A stretch of DNA of 64,000 bases from Oculina patagonica (lineage: Eukaryota). The stretch spans positions 38,812,001 through 38,876,000 of the forward strand of contig NC_135761.1 in the NCBI RefSeq assembly GCF_052425735.1, given 5' to 3'. A program made the translations under genes and the position numbers. The notes below the pieces were generated by a model. That model was not told the DNA's origin. It did no database searches and worked only from the letters and a program-made list of their open reading frames with translations. Below are positions 5,481 through 58,529 of this stretch, in pieces (the first letter of the stretch is position 1; each line of letters starts with the position of its first letter).

Positions 5481-7504
5481 GTTACACTAAAAATCAATAC
5501 AAAGCTAAACTATTAAACGGCATTGAAAATTTCTTTACATCAAAAGTGATTTTATTTTACTGCTCACCCTTAAATATGCTATTCAAAATTCTTGCAATAC
5601 GTAGTTCTGTTGTAAAGGCTGTGAAAGACTCGTCGCACTAAATATGTGGTTCTAAACTATTTAAATAGCTTTGGCTATGGCAGTTCAACTTAGAAATGCA
5701 AAGGCATAAAAGCCAAAGGTCATCACGCTCAAAACTGACTGCATTTAGTGATTTAAACTTGATTTAGTTGCTGGCAATTTCATCCCCAGAAGCCAAAAAC
5801 AAGCGGTTCTTGACCTTTAAAATTTATTCACACCAGGTGAAAGTCAAGAAGATAGAGAAGAAACAGACAAGATGGCAAGCGAGGAAACTAACAGACAAAG
5901 GAAAGAAAAAAGGACAAGCGAACAACAGCAAAAAGAAGGAAGATTCCAGAAACATAAATAACAAAGGCCCATGTCTTTAATTCACAGACTTTAATTTATC
6001 TCATGCTTGTGACAGGTTATCCATTTATCCTAATTGTTTTTGTCGTCGTAAAGTTTACTGTAACTTGAATCAGTAACAGTTTAGCTAGTTGAATGAGGTG
6101 TCAAACAACAGCTTTTATTGAACAAACAGAAAATCATTGACATGGTGACCTTTGAATGCTGAGCAGGTTTATAATTCAAGAAGCTGACTCAGCTCCTTTT
6201 GTTGGTCACTTAGATTTTGATCCTATGTTGATTGCTGGAGTGGGGGTAAAAAAGTTTAATTGATGATAAAGGGTAAGCTTAAAAAATTTATTGGGCCTAT
6301 AAGAGGAGTTGCCTTCTCCACCTCCCCCTCAAAAAGAATGACCACCCTCTACCAGTGAAACCGTAGAAGGATGTAGATCTTTAATACATTAGGAGAAATG
6401 TCATATTTTTAGGTAGTTTGGGCAGCATTTGCTCATACTCTTTTAGTAAAGTTGTGCAGTATGCTTCATTTCTTCTAAATAAAGTGCGTTTTATGCTGAT
6501 TTTGTTTATTTATTAATTTATTGCTCTCAAGCGTGACGAGTACCAGGGGTGGGATGGGGGACTCTGGTTTTTGGTGGTGTCTATGTCTCAAACATTCTCC
6601 AAATTACAAATGGAATGTAAATGAGAAGGCTAATTTGTCTTCTCACTGAAATTTTCCTGGGAAAACGGTATTTCTTGAAAGGTAAAATTCCCAAAGAGCA
6701 TTTCCAATTGGAAAGTGCGTTTACCACTTGCTTCATCCATTAGCTCAGTTCTAGACGTGCCAAGGAAATTGCAGTAAATGGAACACCCAAATCTCATTTG
6801 GGATACCCCTTCACGGTTTTTGCTTACCATTTGCCTTAACTGTGAACCAAACGGTCTTAAGTGTAAATGATAAGCAACCTACATCTGCTCTAGAAATTAC
6901 ACCCCGTTCTAGAAATATTTAATTAGGATGAATTTATATTATATATTATGTACACTTAATTATTATGTACACCAAGGAACTTAGGGCTATTTACACTGAA
7001 GATGTGAGTGCTGCCATTTCATCGGGAAGCATCACTTCTAATTTCAATAGCACAATCTGTATTCAGTGCGCTTTTTACTGCTAGGATTTTCTTCATAATG
7101 TCAACTACATGAATTATTTTAAAAGCAAACATCAAGACTATAACTCTGTCATTTTCGTTTGGCTAATCTGCTCTACTAATGGAACTGTCTGGCGACGTCA
7201 GTCCATAATTCTTGTACTTATACACTATGCCCTTCTGTAAATGTTTAAATGAACAACTGAACCTTGAAACAGAAACTGGTTTTCAGGTTCTGACTGGTAA
7301 AGACTGTGTCTGTCGAGCAGCTGGGTTGAATTTTGCCTTCAATCAGATATTTCAACATCAGTAGAGACAGTTTGCCTGTGTAATATATTACAAAGAGACA
7401 AAGAGAAATATCTCCGAAAGAGGAAAACAGTGCATTCGAAAGAACCATCAAAGCTGTTGCCATTTCTTTGGCAAAAGATGGATTCACTCTTAAGCCTGAA
7501 TTTC

Positions 7505-8206: not shown

Positions 8207-8582
8207 AGTGTGAATAGTGTTTTGTGTTGTAAGCTATTAGGGACGAAGTGTCAGTAATCAAAGATGTAAAATAATAAAGAAACCGTTGTACAAATAAGCT
8301 ATGTATTTCAAGTTAGTAAGTAATTATTTAAATGTGTCTTGTTGTATTAATGTAATTAGCGTAATGTATTGTACTCTAGCGTTGTATTGTATTGTATTTT
8401 AGAAGTAGTCATAATTAGTTATCCTTATAATTACCAATTTTTTTTTCCTTTTGAAAGTGTACATCTAAAAATTACGTCTCTTGTAAATAGCCCGTTGTAA
8501 ATATGTATTTATCTTTCATCTGTAGTACCTATGTAATTAGTGTTGCGTGTAAATAAAGTTGCATAATTTTAAAAAAAAAAAG
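8207..8582 (+). mobile_element. Short poly(A)-tailed retroposed fragment (LINE 3'UTR)
   Basis: TGTA-rich sequence, AATAAA at ~8552 and A-run 8571-8582, flanked by repeated TATTCCTTCC. Absent from paralog B. Confidence 0.6.
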
Positions 8583-8900
8583 GTATTCCTTCCTTTCTAG
8601 CTTCCTTCCATGTATTTATAATGAGCGTGTTCAATTACTACCTCTCAACTTGTTATAAAATGCCGCGCCTTAGGTCTTGGACGCTGATATACTGTACTCT
8701 GGAAGAGGCCCGTCACAAAAAGAACATTTCGTGAATGGGGTGAATCTTTGCACTCAAGCCTGGTGTAAACTTGATGGCATTAGTAAATCGAGGTACGTTC
8801 CTTAAGCTTGATGGCTTTGTGGTACAATCGCCACTTATGTTTGGTACCGGTAATTAGCTAATTTTCTTTCCTTTTTCCAGTCTTGACCTTCAGTTACTTC

Positions 8901-11417
8901 AATCATTGTTTTTTTGCCCTATTAAATATTTTTACAACAGTGTAAATTAATATCTAATATATAATAAGGAGCAAGAGTTCTCAACAAACCCTTTTGGGCT
9001 TACAAGGAGAACCCCTGTTACAAATTTGTTGATAATCTCATATATCTTTACATGGCTATATTTTCGAATCATACTCTTAATCATTTTATAGAAATTCATT
9101 CATTGAGAAGATATATTTTGATTTTTTTCTTAAAAATATAAATTGATTTTGCAGTTTTAATAGTCTTGGGAAGGTTGTTCCATAGCTGACTTCCTTTATA
9201 CTTAATTGAGTGTTTGTTGCAATTTATATGAATTTTCGTTGAAGACCTTGTATGATGGCTGTGGAGATCTCTATTAAGGGTAAAAAATGAATCGAATGTT
9301 GCTGGCAGCATTTTGTTAAAGTATCGAAACATAAATAAAGCTGTTTTCTCTTCATTTATTTGGCCAAATGGAAGAATTGATAGTTTTTTAAAAATAGGAG
9401 GAGTATGGTCTTTATAGCCTGCAAATGATATTATTCTAATAAGTTTCTTTTGTAACTTTATTAATGGATCTAAACTTGATTGAAATGTATTTGCCTAAAC
9501 AATATTTCCATAATGGAAATAAGGGTAAATTAGTGCATAATAGAGCATTCTTAATATTTTCAGTGAGACATAGTGTCTTGTTTTGCAAAGAATTCCAGCT
9601 ATTTTCGATATTTTATTTTGAATATAAGCAATGTGCTGCTTCCAATTTAACTTTGAGTAATGTTTATTCCCAAGAACTTTGTAGAATTTACTTGTTTGAT
9701 TTCTTCGCCATTAATTCTTAACTTTAATGGCTCCTTGTTTTGTTTTTTTTGCCTTAAATAGAATAACTTGAGTTTTCTTGATGTTTAAAGTGAGTTTGTT
9801 TGCTTGTAGCCATTCGGTTACTTTTATAAGTTCATTGTTTAGTACCTGGTTAAGAGATTTCACATTAGTATCTAAGTAGAATACGTTTGTATCGTCTGCA
9901 AAAAGAATAAATGATAATATTTCTGAACACTTATGTATATCGTTCATATAAATTAGAAATAGTAAGGGACCTAAAACTGAGCCTTGCGGAACACCACAAG
10001 TTATCTTTTCTCTACTCGATACAGTGTTATTAAATTTTACCACTTGATTTCTGTTTGTTAGGTAATTTTTAAACCATTCGAGAGCTACTCCCCTTATCCC
10101 GCAATGCTGAAGTTTAGCAATAATAATCGAGTGGTCGACAGTATCAAATGCTTTTGATAAATCTAAAAATATCCCAGCAGTAAACTTTTTTTTACCGATT
10201 GCATCAGTCAGTTTTGTTACTAATTCTATGATTGCTGTCTCAGTGGAGTGATTTTTCCTAAATCCAAACTGTTTGCTATATAGTATGTCATGTTTTTGCA
10301 TAAAACTAATTAATATGTTGTACATATTTTTTTTCTAAAATTTTTGAGAAACATCGAAGAACAGCTACAGGTCTATAATTTGAAAATAAACATTCATCTT
10401 CGCTCTTATACACTGGTGTTATAAGCGACGTCTTTAATTTGTCAGGAATTATGCCTGTTGTAAATGATTTATTGAATATTGACACGAGAGGCTTTATTAT
10501 TAGAGGTGCTATTTGACGAATTACTTTTGGACTTAATTCGTTGATTCCCGTACTTTTTGTTGGGTCTATTTTTAATAATTCTCGCTCAACCTCATCTTCC
10601 GTTACAGGGGCAACGAAAAAACTTTCGTAGTGGTTTTAATTATTCAAAAAGGATTTAAAAATTAAGGAAGATGATGGCACTTTTTCTGCAAGTTTAGGGC
10701 CTACATTAGCAAAATATTCATTAAATTTATTGGCTACTTCATATGGATCAGTTATCTCATTTTCATTATAAGAAAATGTGCTTGGACAATTTTTATAACT
10801 TTTGTTTTTATTCATTATTTCATTTATTAAACTCCATGTTTTCTTGACATTGCCTTGTGTTTGCTCGAATTTTTCTTTATAATAACTCTTTTTGAGATTC
10901 TTATCAAATGATGAAGCTTATTTCGATATTGCTTATATTTAAGTTTATTTTCTGGTGTGGGCCGTTTTATTAATTTTTTATACAGTTTGTTTTTAGTTTT
11001 GAGAGACCTCTGAATTCCTTTTGTCAACCAAGGTTTTTGGTGTGACTTAAGAATTCCACTTGCAATTTTTTTAATTGGAAATGCCTTATTGTATAAACTA
11101 TATAGTTTATTATAAAAAATGTTATATGATTAATTTGGATCATCGTTGTCAAGTACTTCTGTCCACAAATCTTCTTTTGATAGCTCATCCATTAGGTTAT
11201 CAATGTTATTAGGTGTTATTTGCCTCATTTGAGTTACTTTTTGAGCATTATGTAGCTTAGTATTTCGTTTGATTGTAAATACAGGGAAGTGATCTGAAAT
11301 ATCTGTAATCAATATACCATTCATGTTACTATCATCTAGACTGTTTGTTAATATGTTATCGATCAGTGTTGCACTTTTATCCATTATCCTAGTTGGTTTT
11401 GTTATAAGTGGATATTA
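8901..11417 (-). mobile_element. 5'-truncated, frameshifted L2/CR1-group LINE ORF2 (end of APE endonuclease + reverse transcriptase)
   Basis: Motifs SATLIDNILTN..ISDHFPVF, QFGFRKNHST, FLDLSKAFDTVDH, GVPQGSVLGPLLFLIYMND, LFADDT. The empty site (tacttc|gaaag) is visible in paralog B at ~16037. Confidence 0.92.
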
Positions 11418-11426
11418 TTCGAAAGT

Positions 11427-11635
11427 TTAAAACAACTAAAGAATAGAGGGAGTGTAGAAAAAAAGCCAGGCCGCCAGAAAAGTTTTGCATTCCACCATTG
11501 GTTTAATCGTTTTGTAAGGAATGCTGAGCCAATGCCTAACTTGGACACAAGCCAGTTTTAAGCGAGGTCGAACGCAAAACTTTTCTGGCGGCCTGGCTTT
11601 TCTTCTACACTCCCTCTATTCTTGCGTTGTTTTAA
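11427..11635. repeat. Fold-back (inverted) duplication
   Basis: 11560-11635 is the reverse complement of 11427-11489 (and of 16045-16119 in paralog B). Confidence 0.85.
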
Positions 11636-22310: not shown

Positions 22311-22755
22311 TACTAATCAAAACTATAACAAAATTCTCGATCGGTGATTGGTTATCAGCAGCCCGATTTGAGCACTAATAGGACAGTGTACGCGTCATGC
22401 TTGTAATTGGACAGTGTAATAGGACAGTTTACGCGTCATGCCTGTGTAATTGGACAGTACGCGTCATTTTGCGTGCGCTGTTGTTGTGCATTTTGTTGAG
22501 TAAACTGTTATGTTTTTCAATATTTTTAAAGGCGTTACCATTTAACCATTTAACCGAAGATAAGTTTAATGTGTTTCTCAAATTTTGTCATAGTTTTGAT
22601 TAATTGGTAACTGAACTTTGTGTCATCCAATTCTGTCTGTAATCGTACTCGTGATTAAACAAGTCGGACTCCTGCTTCGCGGTCGTCCGATTTTGTTAAT
22701 CACTCATATGATTACATACGAATTGGACTCCACTCAGTCCTATTACCATTATTAA
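22311..22755 (+). mobile_element. Non-autonomous hairpin-ended element with the same architecture as the Crypton-like element at 30133-32184
   Basis: Left 22-bp IR (22314-22335) pairs 21/22 with subterminal 22581-22602. TGATTGGTT motif at ~22345. A ~150-nt terminal hairpin 22603-22750 has a TTC loop at 22676-22678 and TC/TC internal loops. Ends are TACTAA and TATTAA. Confidence 0.8.
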
Positions 22756-24879
22756 CAACAAGGTTTACTAACTGCTAAAAAACAAGTGCCTTGAGCCTGA
22801 ATGTGAATTTTCTGAAACCCATGAGCTACCAAATGAGCGTAAAGAGGATGATCCCAGACTACCGCCAAGTTATGTTGCTGATGCTTCATGTGAAGAGCAC
22901 CTGAGATTACATCTATGTTGCCTGTGATTACACCAGCTGAACAGTGTAAATCGTCCAATGAAATAGGCCTCAGATCAAAATTTTACAACATCCTGGCTGG
23001 AGAAATTTGTAGCTAGATTTACAAATAACTAAGGCCCAGTTCATAGATCTCAGATCCCAAGTTGCAGCTTTAAAGCTTTGTTAATTTAGTTTCAAACAAT
23101 GAAATGAAAGCACCAAATGTTATACTCATGGTTTCCCAAGTTACAATATCTTGTAACATTTTAAATGTACGAGCTTTGATTGGACAACATGATGTATTTA
23201 GACCAATCCCGTGCAAGAAAAATATTAGCCGTGGATAGATTACAGATACCAAAACTTTGTAGTCATAATCCCGCCAAGAAAATTAATATTTATAACAAAT
23301 TTAAAAAGTCTATTGCTATTACAATCACAAGCTGCGCTTATGACACTCATTATTAAACAATAACACTTTATTCATCCAATGGAATTAGTGGAATTTGGAT
23401 ACGTGTGATTTGAAGTGCCACATATAAAAGAAACTACAGCAAAAATTTTCACAATTTTCAGACAACTGTGCAAAAACAAACAAATCTTTTTCCAAAGCAC
23501 TATGTTCCCGAAAGAAAAAAGAACTGGTATCGCGCCAACTCTTTTGCTAATTGGAAAGGAGCTCATTTTCAACAAGAAACAACTTGTCCATGTCAACTGG
23601 GAAGGAAAAATAGTTCTAGCAGAGATCCTTGCCTTACTAGAAAGTTTTAATCGTGTGTTTTAAATGATGTTTAGAGTCAGTGTTATTTTCTTATGCACAA
23701 CTGTAGAAAGTTACATTTATTACGATTTCTTTTTATCCCTCACAAGTTTTGTACATGATAAACAAGCACTGTCCCAAAAAGACCTGGCGTGCGTTTCTCA
23801 AAGTCCCTTAAACTTCTTGGACTCGAAACTTTTCGGTGCTGTTTTTGGGCACGTTTTTTGGGTTGGAAAAGCATTTCTCAAAGGATCCAAAAGTGTCCAG
23901 TATTTTTCGGGTCGGTCTTGCTGTGGTCACATGCTCTAGAACATTGAAGCTCAATGTTCGCAAGCAATAATGCTGTAGTTATTTAAGGTTGTTCTAGCAC
24001 AGTTTACTGAAGAGATGAATGAAGCCCTGATCCAATAATATCAAAAATACCAAGTATGTGCAGGTCCTTAAACAGCCATTCTGAATGCTCAGGCTTATAA
24101 CAACTTGATTATTTCCCTCTGTCCATAAAGAGTAAGGAGCCAACAATGTGCCAAGGCCAGAGATAAATGCGAAATCAGCAATAATTTTATTTTCTTTCAA
24201 CAAATTTGGCATTTTTTGGCAAAATTTACAATGAAAAATTCTTTATTAAAAGACTACTGTGATAATTATCTATAGGTCAAAACTATTTACAATAAACGGT
24301 TCTATGATACAGTCATTAAAATATATAGAAAATGAATAAAAGCTGAGAAGCGTTTAAAATTGGAACAAGAATCTAACACAAATAAACCAGCCAAATTTCC
24401 ATAATCTAAACTTCTTTTGTTTGATCCACGATCCACGAACTTCAAAATTAGGCAGAGTCCAGAATCCGAGCTAAGAATGAATCCTGGTAATTTTCCACGG
24501 AAGCCCAAAATCCATGTGATATTAGAAACCTTATCCGACTATCTCTGAACCTGTTCAACACCACCGTAATTAACAATGCAGGCATCTTCTTTCTAATCTA
24601 ATCATTGATAGGTTGCGTTTTTTTGTTACTCTTTCAGCATGGGAAGACACGAGAGTATTGTCATACAAGTGTTTGAACCCATTTACGGATTTAAGGTAGA
24701 TATGTATGTGCGTTGTTTCCTTTCAACTTGTTTCTTCCATACTAAAAATACATCATAAGTGCAAATCCAAGTTAATAAAAAATAAAAATTAGCTTTAAAA
24801 TGCCTTCCAAAACAAATGAGTCTTTTATAGATACTTTTAAGCATGCTTAAATATTTAAATTTATTTGCACTACATTCCA

Positions 24880-28369: not shown

Positions 28370-30164
28370 TACTGCCAATGACCCAGTGACAAGTGAATAA
28401 ATGGAAACTCTGTTCTCAGTGGCCTCAACATTAAGAGGCTGTGAGTTGACATAGCCCATTACCTGGAACATAATTTGTTGTTAATTATTAGGCGTGGACA
28501 TAATGAATTAGTGTTCTTGTAGCTTTTTGCAATCTTGTCCCCAGAGTCCATAACTAAATGATTCTTGGTTCTGAAGAATAACATTGTTGCCTCTGGGGAC
28601 AAGGAAAGAGCATTATATATAAAATGAACAAGTTTCACCCTAATAGGTGCAACAAATATTTATTATTTATTATTTAATATTTAGTTAAAATACTGTACAA
28701 ATAATAATTTACTAAATTAAATGGATTGGTGTCATATCGTCTGGGTGAGTGAAAAGGGACAAAAATTGACATTGACATTGTAATGAACACTGTATTGTCT
28801 TATCAATTCCATTGGAATAATGTAAATGTCGCACGTGCAGACAAAATAATCAAGCCAACATGTACTGTATAATACAATTTGTAAAAATTTATCAATGACA
28901 TTTTTGTCAGGAGCAGGACACATGATAACAGTACTTGGCAAGAAAAATAATTTAACAGCCACAACTTGGACTGTAAACTGTATAACAGTGTGACCTTGAC
29001 TGTCATTTTACTTCAAAGAATAAGTTCATTTCAGTTGTTTAGTTATTATGACTGATTACTCTCTATGTGGCATCAATTAATATATAGATTTAGGCAAGCC
29101 TAAAAGCGGAGCTCCCAGTTATTTCCCCTTAATAATTTTTTAGACTGTTTTTTATTCATGTTATTTTCTTTATATGCGATACGTATCCCTTTTCACCATG
29201 AACAACAGCACCAAATAAGAGTTAAAAAATCGATCAATCAAAAATATCATTAGTAGTCTATGCATAACCTTGGTTCTAAAGATACACTCGCAACTCTCAA
29301 AGTTAAACAAGAACAAAGAAAGGGTTGCTCTAGAACATATCCATACCCCCATCATAACTGGTATGTTACAGCTGTACATAACACAACTGGAACGTTTTGC
29401 ATGTAGCTTCCCCCTCCCCCAAATGGGGGCCCTATACGATGGAATGGTGACAATGACAGTCTTATTATTGCCTAAGGGACCGGTCATTATTTATGTAGAG
29501 GGGGGGAGGGGGAGGGAAAAAATATGTTGGAAAGATCAAAATTTCGGTAAGGCCCCCCCTCCAGGCCATGTAAGTAGCAAGTGACCCCTGCTTCTTTATT
29601 ATATTTACGTGATGACCCCCCCCCCTTCACCTCATATCTCCCTTTATATGCCTTAAGTAATTATTAAATGCATGTTACATACAATCTTAATTGCACACTT
29701 GTTCTGGATACTCTTTCAGCAATAGGGCAAATTTTGGATGAGTTATGTGTATAGCAAAAATACCTCAATTATTAACTCCTTAACTTTGGAAGTGATAGTT
29801 TTTACAAATTATGCTCTCATGGTGAACACAAATGTAATACCGGTAACCATGCAAAATATAATTCTTTTCCAATGATTTTCCTTAAGTGTAAAAGAACTAC
29901 TTTCTTGTTGTTATATCATGTGTTATTACTTCTTGGGCTATTGCAGTGATAATCATTTTGTAAAAAGAAATAATTGCAGTCAAACCAGATATTAAAGCAG
30001 ATAGGTCTGGATTCTTTATTTAACTAAAACTTGAGATAACAATGGAGTTTAGAGTGCAAACAGTATTTCTGTAAAATACAAATCACTAAAGTTGTACATA
30101 ATAGTGGAGTTTAAACAAAAGAAAACAATAGAAATTAGAAAATAGTCCAAAGGAAATACGTGCG

Positions 30165-30173
30165 CTGATTGGT
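30165..30173 (-). promoter_or_regulatory. CCAAT-box-like motif (TGATTGGTT) ~100 bp upstream of the YR start codon
   Basis: The same motif lies at the same ~30-bp offset from the left end in the non-autonomous element (~22345). Confidence 0.4.
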
Positions 30174-30272
30174 TAATAATCGTATCTCCATAACTCGATA
30201 GAAACACAGAAAAGTTGTTGTCGTCAGAGCAGTTAGTCACGGCATTACCGTGAAAGCCAGACGAGGATAAAA

Positions 30273-31702
30273 ATGTTAAATGCCAATGCCAGAGGCGACG
30301 ACGAACCGGTTAAGAAAAAACAAAGATTTGCAAGCTTAGAAGCAAACGAGTTGGACGTTTTATTAGACTCAGCACAGTCTCAAAGTACAAAGTATAACAC
30401 ATCGTTTGCAGTTTCTGTTTACAAAGGTAAGCAACGAAAAAATGTTTATTACAATAAAAAGCTCGGTTTGAAGTCAACAATTTTCAATTAAATTCTATTA
30501 AATTAACTGAAAATAACAAACGTTACTTGTTTTTAGAATGGGCCCAGCACAAAAATGTTGAAAAACCACTACACGAACAAACTGACGAGGAACTCGACAA
30601 CAACTTGAGAGCCTTTTATGCCGAGGCAAGAAACAAGGAAGGCAATGAATACGGAAAATCTACCCTATTGTGTTTGAGAAGCGGAATTGAACGATATCTT
30701 AACTTCCCCCCTTACAACCGAGGTGTAAGGTTTTCCCAAAATCCTGTCTTCAAAAATTCAAACATGATGCTGAACGCCAAAATCAAAGATTTGAAACAAC
30801 AGGGCAAGCAAAACATTGAACACAAACCTGACATTTCCGTACAAGACCTTCAGAAGCTAAAATGTCATCAAGCATTGTCTCCTTCGACTCCTCTCGGCTT
30901 GTTAAGAAATGTTTGGTTTAATACAACGCTGTACTGGTGCCGTAGGGGCCGTGAAGGTCAAAGAAATTTGACCTCCTCGAGTTTTAAGTTCCTCCGAGAC
31001 GAAAACAACCGTCCATACGCCACAATGACACACGATGAGTCGACGAAGAACCACCCAGGCGGCGTTGGTGACATAGAAAGCTTCGAAAAAGAAGGAAGGC
31101 TGTACAAAACAACAGATGATCCCAGCGACGGTTTCAATGCGCTGCAGTTCTACATCTCAAAGCTGAATCCAGAATGTACAGCCTTCTTCCAGTACCCGAA
31201 ACGAAAGTGGTCTCCTTCCGACCCCATCTGGTACGAAAATCGCCCGCTCGGCATTCACAAGTTGGGCACGATGATGAAAGAGATAAGCGAAGTGGCCGGC
31301 CTTTCGATGAAGTATACAAATCATTCAGTGAGGGCAACGGCAATTACCATCTGGTTCAATGCTGGCCTATCCAATCGTCACATAATGGCTATATCCGGCC
31401 ACCGAAATGAGCAGTCATTTAGGAGCTACAACGCACGTCCTTCGTCTGCACAACTCCAACAGAGCAGCGATGTGTTATCGACAGCACTTGGCGCGACTTC
31501 ACAACCTTCAACAGCGCTTCAGATCCAACCACAAGCTCCACAACAGGCCCAGCTATTCTCCCAGATGAGTGCCCAGTCAAATTCGTTCAACAGAAATGCC
31601 ACCTTCACCAACATGTTCTCGGGTTGCTCGATCGGCAGCGTTCAAGTGGTGGTCAAACCATGCGGCGGAATAGATGAGCCGAACGCAAACTACAATCCCT
31701 GA
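30273..31702 (+). CDS. Crypton-type tyrosine recombinase (DUF3504-like; KCTD1/ZMYM/QRICH1-related domain); exons 30273-30426 and 30537-31702, 439 aa
   Basis: GT-AG intron 30427-30536 joins the two ORFs in frame (VYK-E-WAQ). Catalytic residues present: R (CRRGREGQR), K (STKNHPGG), HxxR (TNHSVRAT), H (SGHRN), Y (FRSY). No internal stops. Confidence 0.92.
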
Positions 31703-32011
31703 CTTCTACCAGTTTAAGCATCGGCTTAGTTATTTTGCATTATTTTGTCAAGTTTAAGGCCAAATTTCTTTGATTCCATGACAGAAAACGCTGACTTTTA
31801 GCGTTCTTGCCTACACGTCGAACAGCCTCGAAGAATTGATTTATTTCAGTCGATTGATTCCTTTAGCATGATTGGTTGAGCTTGTTTATGACGTGGTTTT
31901 TGCGAGGTGTAGAGAATCTACGTTTTGAAGACAAATAAAATGGCAATTTTACTTGCGTTCTTCGTTATTTCCTTTGGGCTATTTTCTAAAAGAGATAGAA
32001 AACATTTTTTC

Positions 32012-32045
<34 letters not shown>

Positions 32046-34837
32046 AGTTTGGGAGAACTCGAAAAAGCTGTGGAAACACTCGCCTTCGGCTCGTGTTCCC
32101 AGAGCATTTCTCGTTCTCCCAAACTTCCACTCGTGTTTCTATAACTCGATAGAAACACGGAAAATGTTTTCTATTTCTTAATTATAGCATAAAATTGTAC
32201 AATTTAGCGTCACTGTTTGACTTATAGTGTTTGCACTCTTCTATTTAACTGTTTTACCCAACTCAAACTGCTGATCCCCCTAAATCTTTATAAAATATTT
32301 TAGCCCCCCCCCTCTTGCCACTCTGAAATAGCCTTGACCCCCCCCCCCCTCTACATAAATAATGACTGGTCCCTAACACCAAAAATAACAGCTTCCTGCT
32401 AGCAAACTCAGTAAAAGGTAGTGGCAAGCAAAATATTGACATTCCAGATGTCATTCTGCCAAATAGGGTCCCCAAAACGATAACACCTTTTTCCTTTACG
32501 AGTCCCTTTGCCCTTAGCTTTATTACATGTAAACTTAGCAAAAATTCTGGAGAGGCATAAATACTGTTTGTTACATGTAGTTCTAAACTCAGGTATAGTT
32601 TGCTTGGCAAAAATTTTACCATGCCATTTTACCATTTTACCAGGCATTAAGAGATTGATGAAATGTGTATCTCATTATCATAATTATTGTTCTTTGCAGT
32701 GTGGGCACTGGGAATTAAATGTTTAGGTAGCATGATGATTTTTTTATGTACATGATTGTACCTTATCTGGCTTTATTTCATCAACTTTAAAATTACACCT
32801 GTCCTTATAAATAAATTGTATTCTACAGACAGTACATTTGTACATGCAATGAAGAATAAAATATAATAATCTGATTGTTCATTTATCTCTTTCTGTGTCT
32901 GCAACTCTGTGGAAATTCTGCTACCCGTGTTAACCCTGAAAAAGGCAAAAAAGACATAAGATTTGTTGATGATCATTGGCATCAAATGAATGTTTATAAT
33001 TTTAAATTAGCTTAAATTGTTCAGAACACTCTGCAGATGCATAAAAAAGAGATATATTTTTCCAATTTTTGCCTGGGCCAGGGACTGTGTTGGGGGATAT
33101 GTTCAGAAACAAAAAAATCCTTTGACCTACTGAAGGCATAAATAGTGCTATCAAAAAGACCTGGCATATAACTAAGCTTTGGTGGGTGTTTTCCTATGTT
33201 TTCCCTATTAAATGAGGTGTCTTAAGACTCTTACATGTATATTGCTCTCTGACAGGTGCTGTTGAAAGCACTGTGATTAATTCCACGAAAGCTTACATAT
33301 TCTCCCCTTTCTTAGTGATGTAGCTAAGAAAACACTACGCTGGCTCATCAACAAGCCTAACTGTGAAATTTCAGCTGAGTTAAAATTCTATTTCTTTATT
33401 CGCCTAGTACCACAACAAGACAATTTATGTTAGGTTAGGGCTTAAGCTTACATGTAGATATTAAGATTAGCTGTTAACAAGCGGAATTTGAACAGGTCAA
33501 TTTGCACTTCTCCCACAAAATAATTACAAGTATTTCAGTAATTTGTCGGGTCAGGTAGCAGATCTTGTTGGGTTTTTTTGCCCTCCTACCCCTCCCCCCA
33601 TCCCCTCTTTTCTTGAACAATGAAAACATTACATTTTGTATGTATATTTACATGTGCAGTTACATGTAAATTGTGTATATTAAATTCCAAAAAAGGAACC
33701 ATGATTTTAAGGAAACATAAACTTACCAAGCAGTTAAAACACTTATCATTTTTCAAACCCCAAAATTTTACACTTAAAAAACAAGTTTCATGCTCTAATG
33801 TAGATTCACATAAACTAAACTCTGTCATAGAGCATTTAGAGAAACAAAGGTATAAACTGACACTAATGTTATACTTACCTTCATCATCACAGACATTAAC
33901 TGCACCCCTTGAATTCCTGTTTTCCCTCACTAAAAACAAAATGTACACAATATCAAAAACCCATAAAAGGTATGGAAATCCTAATATAGCAAGTTTTAAA
34001 AATGAAACAGATTTGCTTATATGAAATTAATGATAAACTCAAACTGCCTCTTACAACCTCCATAAATACCGGTCACTCAATTAACCTCGCAAACCTTGAT
34101 GTACATTTGAATGTAAATGTATTTTAAATTTGCTTTAAATGATATTTTCCTCATTGCAGACAGGCACATTTTAAACTTTTTTTTTATTTCAGGATCGAAA
34201 ACTAACCTGCTACTCTTGTAGAAAAAATAATTCAGGCAAAAATATCTGATTAGTCACTGCTTTAGGCTGGAAAACTTTGAAAGGATTAAAAAATTGTACC
34301 AGTCACAACCATCAAGATAGCAATGCTAATAGCCACAATTCCCCTCTGGTTGTCCGGGGCAAGTAGATTTTCCTGTCAAGCAATTAATTTTTCATGCCTG
34401 CTTGCATAATGGGTAAAGGCCCAGGCATATCATGATCATCTGACTACAAGTTAATTATACAGTCACAAGTTTGCTAATACATAGTGTCACATGCACTGTC
34501 CTAGGCCAACAAAATTTGAGAGCTGCTTGTTGACCACAGGGCAAACTCGATTTTTTTTCCAAGTCCTTATCCTATATTATAACTGATCAATTTGGTTGTT
34601 ATAACATAAAAAAGTTCATGATCTTACACATAACATATTAGTGCTTTTTTCTCTATTGTAATTTACAAGAATCCAGGCGTAGTCAATCGATAGAAGTTGA
34701 TATCTCAAATCTGTCGATACAATCGATATCTATTGATATGAATCACAAATTGATAATCGGTAATCGATAACAATAGAACTCACAGAAAAAAATATTATCA
34801 ATTGTTATTAATTGAGAAAATCGATGAAAATCGATAC

Positions 34838-35495
34838 TACCGAAACAGGTAGAGCGCAAATTCAAAAACATGCGTAACGGTTGTTTTCGGCGACAAACGG
34901 CAACGATCTGCGTCACGTGGCTTTGCTTGTCAAATGAAAAAGGTAAACGCACATGGTTACATTCCTTTGCGTTCTGACTTCGTTGTTTGTGCCAAAAACA
35001 ACCATTACGAATGTTTTGGAATTTGCGCTATACCTGTTTCGGTAGTATGTGGTCCTCGGGCCGCCATCAGCAATAATCATGTCGATTATACTGCCTCTTA
35101 GGCTGTCATCGATTGGTTTTCCTGATATAAATGTCCTGCCTTTGCTGTTTACAGAGAACACCATCATCGAAAGCTTCATTAAATGTTGAATGAAACGTTC
35201 AGGAATGTGACTGTGTATGTTGTGGTTTAATTTTGTTTTTGGTTTAAAATTTTTCAAACCAGTTTGGTTTTTATTTTCCATTGTCTCCTATTCATTATCA
35301 TAATCTGAAACAAAGGGAAATAAAAATCAAACTGGTTTGAAAAATTTTAAACCAAAGATAAAATTAAACCACAACATGTACGTTCACCTTTTTTCATTTG
35401 ACAAGCACAGCCACGTGACACAGATCGTTGCCGTTTGGCGCCAAAAACAACCGTTACGAATGTTTTTGAATTCGCGTTCTACCTGTTTTGGTAGT
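34838..35495. mobile_element. Fold-back element with ~115-bp IRs, enclosing a paired-box-like transposase N-terminal fragment (~35060-35167, minus strand)
   Basis: 34838-34952 is inverted relative to 35378-35495, with a partial third arm at 34975-35045. Peptide MMVFSVNSKGRTFISGKPIDDSLRGSIIDMIIADGG resembles the paired-domain start (VNQLGGVFVNGRPLP..R..I). Confidence 0.6.
35216..35378. mobile_element. AT-rich MITE with ~50-bp TIRs
   Basis: ATGTTGTGGTTTAATTTT..GGTTTAAAATTTTTCAAACCAGTTTG ... CAAACTGGTTTGAAAAATTTTAAACC..AAAATTAAACCACAACAT. Confidence 0.85.
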
Positions 35496-46700: not shown

Positions 46701-47889
46701 AGATGTCTTTAGACTTGTTACACTAATAGACGCTCTACCAGTAGAATGGCGTGAATCATTAAAAACGTTTGTATATAAAGGTGATGAACCTTTTTACATG
46801 CACGATGAGATAAAAGGGATCAATTTAGGTTTCTGGGAAACTGCTCACCTACCCCTCCCCAAACCTAACATTTTGCCCAAAGCGATAAGTAAGGGTTAAT
46901 GTTAGGTTTGGGGAGGGGTAGGTGAGCAGTTTCCCAGAAACCTAAATTGATCCGATAAAAGTAATTTTAAATGGACAAAGCATTTTAATCAAAACAGTGG
47001 TTTCCAAATCTGTCTATAAGGAACTTCGGGATAGAATCATCACCCCACCAACTGCTCAACTGAATTTTAATGCGCGATTTATAAATGATGTCTTAGAATG
47101 GAAAGAAATCTACGCCTTGCCTTTTCGCGTTGCATTGGATACAAAACTGCGTGAATTTCAGTATAAATTGTTTTTTACTTAATAGGTGTCTTGTGACAAA
47201 TAACCTTCTATACAAAATTAACGTCGTACAATCTCAAGCCTGCTCCCTTTGCGGTGAAATGGACGAGTCCCTAGAGCATTTTTTTGTGTCTTGCCATTAT
47301 TCAAAGAATTTCTGGGCTGAGGTTATCAAATGGCTTGAAAATCTTGACGTAAAGATTAAACAGCTCTCTGACAAAGATATAATGTTAGGCATTCTAAAGT
47401 GCGAGGATGAGTTATTTGTTAACCACATTTTATTAGTCGCCAAACAATATCTGTATTCTTGTAGACAAAGTAAATCTCTACCTTCAATAAGGGTATTAAA
47501 CTCAAAGATTACATTGATTTACCAAATAGAGGCAATGATATCAAAATCAAACAATAAGTTGTCAGCTCACAATAAGAAATGGAGCAAATATAAAAATAAA
47601 TTAGTATGCAATCCTGCACTGTTAGCCGCAAATTAATAATAGCATTGTAGAATAACATTTAAAACTGATAAATGAACTGAGGACTCTGTGTCAACTCCGA
47701 TTAATTTTGTAATATTTGTAGTGTCTGTTATAATTTAGTAATTTAAAGAAGTTTATAGTGTGGTAATTAAAATATTGTATTTTATTTTATTATATTTTTT
47801 GTAGTGTTTGTAATAGTGTTGTAACTTAAACATTGTATGTAGTTTTTGGAAACTAATAAAAATAATTAAAATACAAAAAAAAAAAAAAA
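46701..47889 (+). mobile_element. 5'-truncated Tx1/L1-clade LINE with poly(A) tail
   Basis: LIDALPVEWR..DTKLREFQYK..TNNLLYKI..CSLCGEMDESLEHFFVSC..FW..AKQYLY, then AATAAA and A-run 47875-47889. Absent from copy 1. Confidence 0.9.
46817..46953. mobile_element. Palindromic MITE with 8-bp TSD (GATAAAAG), Merlin- or hAT-like
   Basis: Near-perfect TIRs GGATCAATTTAGGTTTCTGGGAAACTGCTCACC. TSD at 46809-46816 and 46954-46961. Excising it restores the LINE frame (HDEIKVILNGQS). Confidence 0.92.
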
Positions 47890-57165: not shown

Positions 57166-58529
57166 TGAGTAACGTACTACTTTCAGCGTTTAGCTCATTT
57201 AGAGCGTATATATAAGCTTAAATATTAGAATTAACTCGTGCTGGTCGACTTTAGTTATCTCAGTGTATCAAGCTACTCAATAAAAAGGGCTTTTTAGAAG
57301 AAAATTAGTTTAGTGACTCTTTAGAATCGATCGTACCAGAGAAGTCAGTGTATTGATTAAGCTTATAAAGATGAGAGTGTTATGTTTTTTTAGTGTAATG
57401 GATTCGTTCTTTCTTTCATCTGCAGCACATGAATTGCAGCATCAAATACGCAAGGCCACACAATGGCTGTTGTGTTGCATGAATGCCCTAGTGGGGATAA
57501 TCTTATGCAACACTTTGCAGGATCTGCTAAGAAGTTCTTCTTCCATTTTTAGGCATCACCAGGACATATGTTGAAAATGGTGGCCCTTTTCCAGTTTTTT
57601 TTTAAATGTTTTTGCGATTTTCCGAGGTTTAAGAATCTATAAATGACGTTTCAATCAGTTTTACTGATCTTCTTAAGGCTGTTCTTAAAGTGTTGTAGAC
57701 AGGCAGATCATTTTTCATGTTCGTCTGCCATATTGACAACATTTTAAGAACAGCCTGAAGAAGATCAGTGAAACTTCAGCTGTTAGTATTACAGATCAGT
57801 GAAGAATATTGACTTTTTTATGAAAAACTGAATGATCTCTTTTTCTTAAAGGCAGGTGCATTAAACCTTTCATCATTGACCACATCTGCAACATCACAGA
57901 CCACATTAGCCATAACAGATCCTTGTAATTAATTTCCAACCAAACATGTTGGTAATGACAAAAACCTTGGTATATTGTTAAATATGAAGTGACTCCTGTG
58001 AATATCAGTATATTTGATCACTGATGTTTTAAGTCCAATTGAAGAGGCTTTTGGAACAGCTGAGAGTTGGCTTAAAAGGCATAGAAATGTTGCAAAACAT
58101 AGCCCAGAGTACTGTATTGCAATATATTTGCAAAATATGATAAGGTAGTTTTGATATGGTGCTGACTGAACCACAATTAATAATTAGAACTTATGGTAAT
58201 CAGTTTGTTTAGTCCTGGAATTGAGCACAAATCCATCATCATCATTTATTTTATTGTTCATGTCGGATAGCACGCTATCAAATCACTTTTAATTAATTAA
58301 TCTGACCACTTTTTACTTTAGCTGTGAGACCAAAGAAAGCAAGGGATGCTTTAGTTAATTGCCACACACATAAGCTTTCATTGTATTTTATTTATGGCAT
58401 CAGGGTTTGGACAAATGGAATTCCATACTGGAGAAGAACAAAATTTGAAATAAAATCAAACTGTTTGAATAGTTACCGCAGAAACACTGTTTTGGAACTA
58501 GATGAATAAAATGGAACAATGACAATTTG

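Follow-up and report, generated by a model that had tools for sequence, protein, structure and literature searches.

The circle model of Crypton movement is an analogy dating from 2003-2011 and, to our knowledge, no Crypton has yet been made to transpose experimentally. Bacterial attC sites, which are 57-141 nt long and carry R and L boxes and single extrahelical bases, have been shown experimentally to recombine as single strands, and in the CTX-phage attP(+)/XerCD system the folded single strand of a filamentous phage of bacteria, whose genome is known to be single-stranded, rebuilds a duplex site, with two inverted half-sites about 90 nt apart and a mismatched centre, for the recombinases of the host. 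The internal complementary region (ICR) of DIRS1 embodies a logic proposed for circle formation. Strand-specific hairpins or bubbles also mark ends and give polarity in elements of the HUH-endonuclease group (IS200/IS605, Helitrons, Replitrons) and at the left telomere of a parvovirus, minute virus of mice, where a TC/GAA bubble is found; these systems employ HUH/Rep nickases with rolling-circle or rolling-hairpin replication. For animal Cryptons, no terminal repeats, either direct or inverted, have been found, and a link between CryptonA and DIRS could not be excluded (Kojima and Jurka 2011, PMC3212892). Here we report on a 64,000-nucleotide stretch of the genome of the coral Oculina patagonica (assembly GCF_052425735.1, contig NC_135761.1, positions 38,812,001 to 38,876,000 of the forward strand; hereafter the window, whose own positions are used as numbering throughout, the coding strand being the top (+) strand), in which a 190-nt hairpin (31990-32179) forms the 3' end of an intact Crypton of about 2.05 kb coding for a tyrosine recombinase only (30135-32181, ends within three letters either way).

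This hairpin is almost certainly the cis-acting terminal site of the Crypton, and it probably functions in folded form. Taken as a whole, the statement that it is the conserved cis-acting 3' end of a coral and sea-anemone CryptonA-type family, function in the folded state included, is the one that we favour, with moderate confidence. The palindrome created by joining the ends, the terminal hairpin and its mismatch code are new for Cryptons as published: neither a hairpin nor a palindrome is mentioned in PMC3212892 or in the 2026 Glomhopper paper (PMC13465315), and searches of the full-text literature gave nothing relevant on a Crypton with a hairpin, palindrome, cruciform or stem-loop.

The element shares with CryptonA a coding capacity limited to a DUF3504-type tyrosine recombinase, with no reverse transcriptase, an insertion without fixed duplication and with few shared end letters, non-autonomous derivatives that outnumber the autonomous copies, and a cnidarian host, Nematostella being already listed (Goodwin et al.; Kojima and Jurka 2011, PMC3212892). 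It differs in its 190-nt terminal palindrome, in a 5' terminus complementary to the flank of this palindrome and in the conserved mismatch code; a terminal palindrome is no ground for exclusion from the Crypton family, since that family is defined by the recombinase. With attC and IntI, the coral system has in common a tyrosine recombinase and an imperfect palindrome of variable sequence but conserved structure, with a few unpaired positions, polarity towards one strand and little need for sequence identity at the crossover. It has no sequence relation to attC, however: tandem G.A pairs and a GNA apex are used, the stem reaches about 90-115 bp and the site is known from sequence only, while the window sequence contains no R or L boxes and no dif-like core, and the recombinase is of the eukaryotic DUF3504 type and not IntI or XerCD. 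The single-stranded stage that is established for the CTX phage is hypothesised here. The attC/CTX systems are thus at most analogues of the coral hairpin. The HUH systems differ from it in their enzymes, the coral element encoding a tyrosine recombinase only.

Results

Architecture of the terminal hairpin

Hairpins were located by sliding DNA folds combined with gapped self-alignment, since a gapless palindrome scan misses most of them owing to small indels. The last 190 nt of the element are an imperfect palindrome, and the segment 31980-32191 folds as DNA into one long hairpin on either strand, with -74.1 kcal/mol (z -16.6) for the top and -74.9 kcal/mol (z -18.1) for the bottom strand, energies matched by none of 200 dinucleotide shuffles. 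The left arm (31990-32084, + strand) contains a small palindrome at 32013-32038 and TC dinucleotides at 32039-40, 32059-60 and 32080-81; the right arm (32088-32179, + strand) contains TC at 32091-92, 32111-12 and 32131-32 and a small palindrome at 32133-32158. Between them, the apical loop TTC (32085-32087, + strand) is closed by a C-G pair within the apex GCC-TTC-GGC, so that the bottom strand reads CCGAAGG, a GNA mini-hairpin motif. Three 2x2 internal loops, each 5'-C TC G-3' facing 5'-C TC G-3', are formed by 32080-81/32091-92, 32059-60/32111-12 and 32039-40/32131-32; counted from the apex they occupy stem steps 3-4, 24-25 and 44-45, a spacing of 20-21 bp or two helical turns. The stem of about 90 bp, the apex, the three identical loops and two A.C mismatches (steps 10 and 40) had all been proposed in an initial annotation made from the sequence by eye, and each of them is confirmed here.

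The remaining irregularities are single G.G, A.A and G.T mismatches, the last of them close to the base, and a TT bulge of 2 nt, so that those of wobble type fall at steps 10, 40 and 90 from the apex. The G.G mismatch is private to the copy in the window, position 32102 being a pairing C in nearly all other genomic copies, and in this family's genomic copies a TATC variant of the loop contributes about 35% of the contig depth.

Conservation, covariation and mismatch code

Exact-protein contig look-ups gave nine assembly loci with recombinase identities of 52-86%, including loci from Actinostola and Actinia tenebrosa, and a scan of metagenome contigs with the family alignment gave 80 further coral-associated loci (39-87% identity); the 31 metagenome loci whose sequence continues for 800 nt or more past the protein match were assessed for a hairpin. 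It is present in eight of the nine assembly loci, 130-190 nt long and 300-560 nt past the stop codon, and is decayed in the ninth (L008). Nineteen of the 31 metagenome loci have an intact palindrome (145-215 nt, 280-500 nt downstream), three retain a truncated remnant and nine have none, several of the latter being partial or very distant protein matches; the hairpin-bearing metagenome loci span 44-87% protein identity. TC stands on the coding strand in all these hairpins. Relative to the gene, the hairpin takes one orientation only, without flip-flop.

When eight hairpins from six families are aligned, compensatory double changes are found at 40 of the 70 consensus pairs, compared with 6-10 when the partners are slid by 1-3 columns and with 17.5 (maximum 25) in 500 shuffles; paired cells amount to 90%, as against 38-53% in the slid controls. 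The irregularities of the stem follow a code of their own. Across 14 hairpin clusters, arm-against-arm differences read on the coding strand comprise 70 C.T and only 2 A.G; among 36 tandem 2x2 loops, TC/TC accounts for 25 and TT/GC for 5, six other kinds being seen once each; and the coding strand of the hairpins has CTCG 84 times and CGAG 13 times. The TC/TC loops lie at steps ~3, 22-27 and 42-45 across families. For the apex it is the form that is kept (C-T-N(1-2)-C-G on the coding strand) and not the sequence, with C-TGC-G in nine cases, C-TAAC-G in seven, C-TTC-G in five, C-TAC-G in two and C-TATC-G in one, that is 24 of 32 apices, most of the others being visibly decayed copies. The A.C sites of the window copy recur in six or more families, as does a G.T located 4-8 nt from the base. 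The initial annotation had suggested asking whether the TC/TC loops and the triloop persist while the stem sequence varies: the loops do, and so does the apex in its T-N-C form, both staying on the same strand in families down to about 47-52% recombinase identity. Among copies, pyrimidine transitions are in excess on the coding strand, an observation not used as evidence because synonymous-site structure explains it.

The same grammar was observed in hairpins of unrelated sequence. Two small ones (L002 2031-2137 and L063 69-187, 107-119 nt) have the ends AACAATTAG...CTAATTGTT in common; their apex reads C-TTC-G/C-GAA-G, and their TC/TC loops, two or three per hairpin, all fall on one strand. 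They lie near Crypton 5' ends in opposite orientations, and the one in L002 seems to interrupt the 5' small-palindrome copy. A weaker example within the window, at 22600-22760 (-31.4 kcal/mol, z -8), combines a C-TTC-G apex with internal loops that contain TC, on the same strand, and a GGTGATTGGTT motif lies about 300 nt upstream of it, at 22344-22354. This hairpin is possibly a miniature element that follows the grammar. In the families of 73-78% identity (L011:13-72 and L012:2133-2192), the 5' region has two adjacent perfect copies of the small palindrome (GTTTCTATAACGTTATAGAAAC), which looks like a tandem classical recombinase core site.

Gene content, boundaries and amplification of the element

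The recombinase gene has a first exon from the ATG to a GTAAG donor (30273-30426, + strand, from the open reading frame list), homologous to L002 2846-2978, a GT..AG intron (30427-30536, + strand) that was read from the sequence and whose splicing keeps the frame, and a second exon that runs to the stop codon (30537-31702, + strand) and matches DUF3504, Phage_integrase and QRICH1. The Pfam matches have E-values of 6.5e-12 for DUF3504 and 1.5e-5 for Phage_integrase, and the 366 homologues retrieved are mostly metagenome sequences, the named ones being cnidarian (sea anemones and corals). In an alignment of ten family members the catalytic residues R139/R140, H266, R269, H292 and Y301 are invariant and the R, HxxR, H, Y set is complete, and the predicted product, 439 aa after splicing, is a Crypton-type (DUF3504-type) tyrosine recombinase. 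Within the 2,047-bp unit there is no further open reading frame of at least 100 aa, and neither an open reading frame nor a domain for reverse transcriptase or RNase H. Related elements measure 2.05-2.75 kb. A 520-nt contig from a run labelled 'RNA?' covers 30268-30399 and 30432-30819, so that the 32 nt at 30400-30431, including the donor of exon 1, are missing; it keeps most of the intron and is a deletion variant, not a spliced transcript.

The 5' terminus (30135-30158, + strand) begins with TTAGAAAATAG, is the reverse complement of 31966-31989 and is the point at which copy-to-copy homology begins. Directly inside it lies a conserved GCGCTGATTGGTT motif (30162-30174, + strand; a CCAAT box on the other strand), which was also identified by sequence comparison after the 5' terminus of L002, L004, L005, L007, L009, L016, L017, L020, L022, L025, L055 and L072 and is likely to be the promoter of the recombinase gene. 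This motif is followed by a partial direct copy of the small palindrome of the right arm and its outer flank (30180-30213, + strand; 88% identity to 32131-32164), kept in L001 and L003. At the other end, the terminal AA (32180-32181, + strand) are the last letters common to the family copies, and AA follows the hairpin in other loci too. Contigs running through the hairpin diverge past 32181, with loose ends in 15, 10 and 1 contigs and an agreement of about 0.48, and the homology of L001 and L003 (83-86% protein identity) to the window extends from ~30127-30135 to ~32181-32190, with none beyond.

Empty sites define the same unit. In Logan contigs from four coral read sets, a joint 30133>32184 skips 2,050 nt with two shared letters (AT), at depths of 4862, 605, 8050 and 85, and a second joint, 30132>32180, skips 2,047 nt with five shared letters (AATTA). 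The site is a high-copy host repeat (word depth 10,000-58,000), interrupted by the element; its left half is at 29900-30134 (13,000-58,000) and its right half at 32182-32400, both outside the element. The two empty-site variants of this repeat differ by 3 nt at the insertion point (...GAAAAT/AGCAT... in the major and ...GAAAATTA/TAGCAT... in the minor one, the stroke marking that point), which could be a target polymorphism or a footprint. Either may have been the target: the major variant would require an element end at 32183-32185, against the family-wide boundary at 32181, and the minor variant fits. The proposal that the hairpin is a terminal structure of a eukaryotic tyrosine-recombinase element is borne out by these joints and by copy homology, which end at 32179-32185. 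No other copy of the element or of the host repeat is present in the 64-kb window. The repeat has runs of 9-12 C on both sides of the insertion, at 32300-32352 and 29617-29625, with lengths that vary among copies.

No fixed-length target duplication was found at the window copy or in the flanks of 14 related insertions, which fits conservative recombination and not a DDE transposase. A PIF/Harbinger-type 3-bp TTA duplication and a piggyBac TTAA target were considered and rejected, since they fit the window copy by coincidence and fail in other loci: there TTA is always present on the left, with a right flank that varies, unlike in DDE-type foldbacks and miniature inverted-repeat transposable elements (MITEs).

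The hairpin has been amplified far beyond the gene. Summed over 32000-32167, the k-mer depths in three DNA read sets reach 52,000-95,000, 8,400-11,000 and 189,000-209,000; the corresponding values for the recombinase gene are 23-94, 16-83 and 68-206. This roughly 1000-fold difference reflects miniature derivatives; among the repeats of these corals, the hairpin family is a major one. Contigs contain deletion joints that fuse 30208-30211 to 31974-32028, and the miniature elements in L009 and L055 have kept the first 115 nt together with the pre-hairpin segment and the hairpin; the 5' end kept in miniatures amounts to about 80-115 nt. As both ends are retained, the cis requirements are the two termini.

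Such abundance, together with several other long palindromes of MITE type in the window, would be compatible with an unrelated foldback or MITE having inserted by chance beside a recombinase gene. This scarcely credible reading is already refuted for practical purposes: the position and orientation of the hairpin recur in about 30 loci of different species and families, its flank and the element's 5' terminus are complementary, the whole unit of 2,047-2,050 bp is absent from empty sites as one piece, and there is no target-site duplication. The five other long near-perfect palindromes of the window (11427-11635, 34820-35040, 35211-35390, 46817-46953 and 57657-57770; -49 to -80 kcal/mol per 240-nt window) lack the TC/TC-GNA grammar and are probably foldback or MITE-type repeats of other families.

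Joined ends complete the palindrome

The segment that precedes the hairpin (31966-31989, + strand) forms with the 5' terminus (30135-30158) a 24-nt inverted repeat of 96% complementarity (p about 0.003 against shuffles). The same complementarity, over 12-26 nt, is found in L002, L004-L007, L009, L016, L017, L020, L022, L025, L055 and L072 (p 0.003-0.09 against shuffles), and in each of these loci a CCAAT-type motif, GCGC(T)CTGATTGG, comes after the terminus, together with a partial copy of the small palindrome that both hairpin arms contain. When the right end of the element is joined to its left end, in a circle or in a head-to-tail tandem, the stem grows to ~115 bp and the palindrome to ~240 nt (-97.4 as compared with -74 kcal/mol), and the terminal AA become a 2-nt bulge inside the stem, exactly at the joint. 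Together with the outer left arm, the pre-hairpin segment resembles an ICR, 31966 to ~32008 being complementary to the joined termini (32161-32179 plus 30135-30158). The element thus shares with DIRS1 an internal segment complementary to the joined termini and mobilisation by a tyrosine recombinase; it differs in lacking reverse transcriptase, RNase H and methyltransferase, in its size of 2 kb and in that the complementary parts are contiguous in one long hairpin.

Head-to-tail junctions occur in two loci: in L009 a miniature of 300 nt, made up of the 5' end and the hairpin, meets a full element at ...GTT AA TTATAAC..., and in L020 a 5' terminus directly follows the end of a hairpin. Neighbouring hairpin elements were also observed at L007:4802-4850 and 5796-5980, L021:2357-2588 and L055:4132-4477, in arrangements that include 5'-end-like sequence after the hairpin, a second hairpin in tandem or inverted, and an abutting hairpin of another family. 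By hand count, about 4 of the 8 letters that open the right flank agree on average with the element's own 5' terminus, for a rough expectation of 2.5-2.8, and this resemblance suggests a preference for targets like the joint of the element.

Strand asymmetry and DNA folding motifs

At the internal loops, the bottom strand reads 5'-CGAG-3' against 5'-CGAG-3', and the bottom-strand apices include CCGAAGG, CCGCAGG, GCGCAGC, GCGATAGC and CCGTTAGG. The pattern C-G-N(1-2)-A-G over G:C pairs is found on the bottom strand of 24 of the 32 apices and CGAG blocks at 25 of the 36 tandem loops. Both are known DNA folding motifs. The CGAG block, solved by nuclear magnetic resonance, consists of two cross-strand-stacked sheared G:A pairs between G:C pairs and is thermally stable (PMC10085684). 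Among the 64 GCNNNGC triloops, GNA alone forms a mini-hairpin, for which the C-G closing pair is required, although it also tolerates GNNA loops, GATA and GTTA among them; melting temperatures are ~70 C for GCGATAGC and GCGTTAGC and 33 C for GCTTTTGC, and the RNA counterparts are far weaker than the DNA forms (PMC13037366). The bottom-strand motifs of the coral hairpins match the GCGNAGC/GCGNNAGC mini-hairpins and the CGAG blocks exactly, including the C-G closing pair (PMC13037366, PMC3201870, PMC10085684). These motifs are known from oligonucleotides or from promoters and origins, whereas their repeated, phased use in a transposon end was not found in the searched literature. The GNA triloop and the tandem G.A pairs that the initial annotation had deduced for the complementary strand therefore correspond to experimentally characterised stable structures (PMC13037366, PMC10085684).

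The same annotation expected the bottom strand to fold far more stably than the top, and this was not found: the computed energies of the two strands lie 1-4 kcal/mol apart, and a nearest-neighbour DNA model gives a difference of about 1 kcal/mol at the window hairpin. With the DNA parameters of ViennaRNA, 10 of 11 hairpins show the bottom strand ahead in stability, by 1-7 kcal/mol, and over the inner ~100 nt it is favoured in 11 of 12, by 2.4 kcal/mol on average. The computed differences are small because energy models do not capture GNA loops and CGAG blocks, and the argument for strand asymmetry rests on the published oligonucleotide data (PMC13037366, PMC10085684).

The bottom-strand apex CCGAAGG is also the mini-hairpin of ssiA, and origins of single-strand replication often carry motifs of this kind (PMC13037366). 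Together with the terminal position of the hairpin, this could point to a replication signal and not a recombination site, the bottom-strand mini-hairpin priming second-strand synthesis, as at the phage G4 origin or RSF1010 ssiA, or the hairpin serving as a parvovirus-like self-priming end. We regard this as improbable, since the element encodes no replication protein, the hairpin does not flip-flop relative to the gene, and the complementarity that spans the joint points to recombination or joining and not to priming.

The hairpin lies 3' of the gene on the same strand and is covered by contigs from runs labelled 'RNA?', as would be expected if it functioned once transcribed, as a terminator or as a long hairpin RNA yielding regulatory small RNAs. 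In the window, however, an AATAAA polyadenylation signal (31934-31939, + strand) lies 56 nt 5' of the hairpin, and AATAAA or ATTAAA is found 46-75 nt upstream in 24 of 32 related hairpins, so that the hairpin is probably outside the mature mRNA. The conserved loops are of the GNA/GNNA type, including GTTA and GATA, and not GNRA, and would be far less stable as RNA; on sense RNA the conserved features would be U.C mismatches; and there is no Rfam match, the best microRNA match being at chance level (E 0.84). The stability of the mini-hairpins as DNA, the upstream polyadenylation signal and the lack of an Rfam match together make a role at the level of DNA the likelier one, and a role in RNA very improbable.

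Discussion

The conserved palindrome, its compensatory changes and its mismatch code are consistent with a site that acts, at least transiently, as folded DNA, either as a hairpin on single-stranded DNA or as an extruded cruciform. The GNA or GNNA mini-hairpin of the bottom strand, together with the three CGAG blocks, would nucleate folding and give a phased, shape-coded surface. Such a fold would rebuild the duplex recombinase-binding motifs, namely the ATAGAAAC repeats and the small palindrome, and would present the joint for strand exchange by the recombinase, akin to IntI on attC or XerCD on the CTX-phage hairpin. The substrate might be specifically the single-stranded bottom strand, cut by the recombinase, but we consider this narrower version doubtful.

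Several observations weigh against this explanation. The generic DNA energy model gives near-equal stability for the two strands. Among the joints listed from assembled contigs there are no circle junctions; empty sites and deletion derivatives are found instead. The only clear departure from the code is seen at 44% identity, in the remotest of the hairpin-bearing families, where the apex is TCG and TC/TC loops are few, and in five families the third TC/TC loop is replaced by TT/GC, a variant that favours the top strand. Arm-to-arm conversion could also keep the palindrome symmetrical, and the families sampled share ancestry, so that the counts are not independent. As regards wobble pairs, A.C differences between the arms (G.T wobbles on the bottom strand) number 28 and G.T differences 29 over the whole stem, which shows no strand bias; the use of a whole-stem excess of A.C as proof of bottom-strand selection was rejected on this count. 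In 13 family representatives, A.C prevails over G.T from the apex to the third TC/TC loop (14 and 5), and the coding strand is favoured from the small palindrome to the base (6 and 15), a reversal with a Fisher p of 0.01, or 0.002 without the degenerate family. The bias towards G.T wobbles on the bottom strand, as suggested in the initial annotation, thus holds for the inner ~45 bp, vanishes over the whole stem and is reversed near the base. Taken with the TT/GC variant, this reversal indicates that the bottom strand is the better built one in the inner module of ~45 bp only.

These same features, namely near-equal computed stability, wobble-type differences without overall strand bias and a bias near the joint opposite to that of the inner part, are what would be expected of a site that is read only as double-stranded DNA. 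The hairpin would then consist of two inverted arrays of recombinase-binding motifs, and the TC dinucleotides and the apex would mark the identity of the arms by breaking the two-fold symmetry, as the asymmetric spacer of loxP/FRT does, or the TC/GAA bubble of the minute-virus-of-mice origin. Motifs of the form ATAGAAA(A)C occur about ten times in alternating orientation, the small palindromes have arms of 10-11 bp and a spacer of 4-6 bp, like classical tyrosine-recombinase core sites, and the repetition of the ATAGAAAC motifs is readily accounted for. Nevertheless, compensatory change extends along the whole stem, even through stretches without a repeated motif. Recognition of CAC-NN-G as duplex would not require NN to be TC on one arm and GA on the other at all three sites, the apex form T-N(1-2)-C closed by C-G is left unexplained, and the same code is present in hairpins of unrelated sequence. 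We therefore consider a purely duplex site rather unlikely, and retain function in folded form as the better account of the hairpin.

A bolder and more speculative generalisation is that cnidarian Cryptons, and perhaps all animal Cryptons, have a shape-coded attachment site, in which the bottom strand of the joined ends would form a hairpin of ~115 bp, composed of a GNA mini-hairpin, three phased CGAG blocks and reconstituted duplex binding motifs, and the tyrosine recombinase would exchange a single strand at the bulge in its stem. If true, this would give eukaryotes their first counterpart of integron attC and CTX-phage recombination, and it would explain how miniature hairpin elements of unrelated sequence are mobilised by one class of enzyme. 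Should the folded-strand reading hold, structure-specific tyrosine recombination would extend from bacteria to animals, with a bearing on the origin of the domesticated DUF3504 genes (ZMYM, QRICH1, KCTD1). Should the folded reading fail, a new and well-documented terminal architecture would remain, in a repeat family that is a major one in coral genomes. With a defined cis element that has exact ends, miniature derivatives, an intact recombinase and a structural code, the question of how Cryptons move becomes open to experiment.

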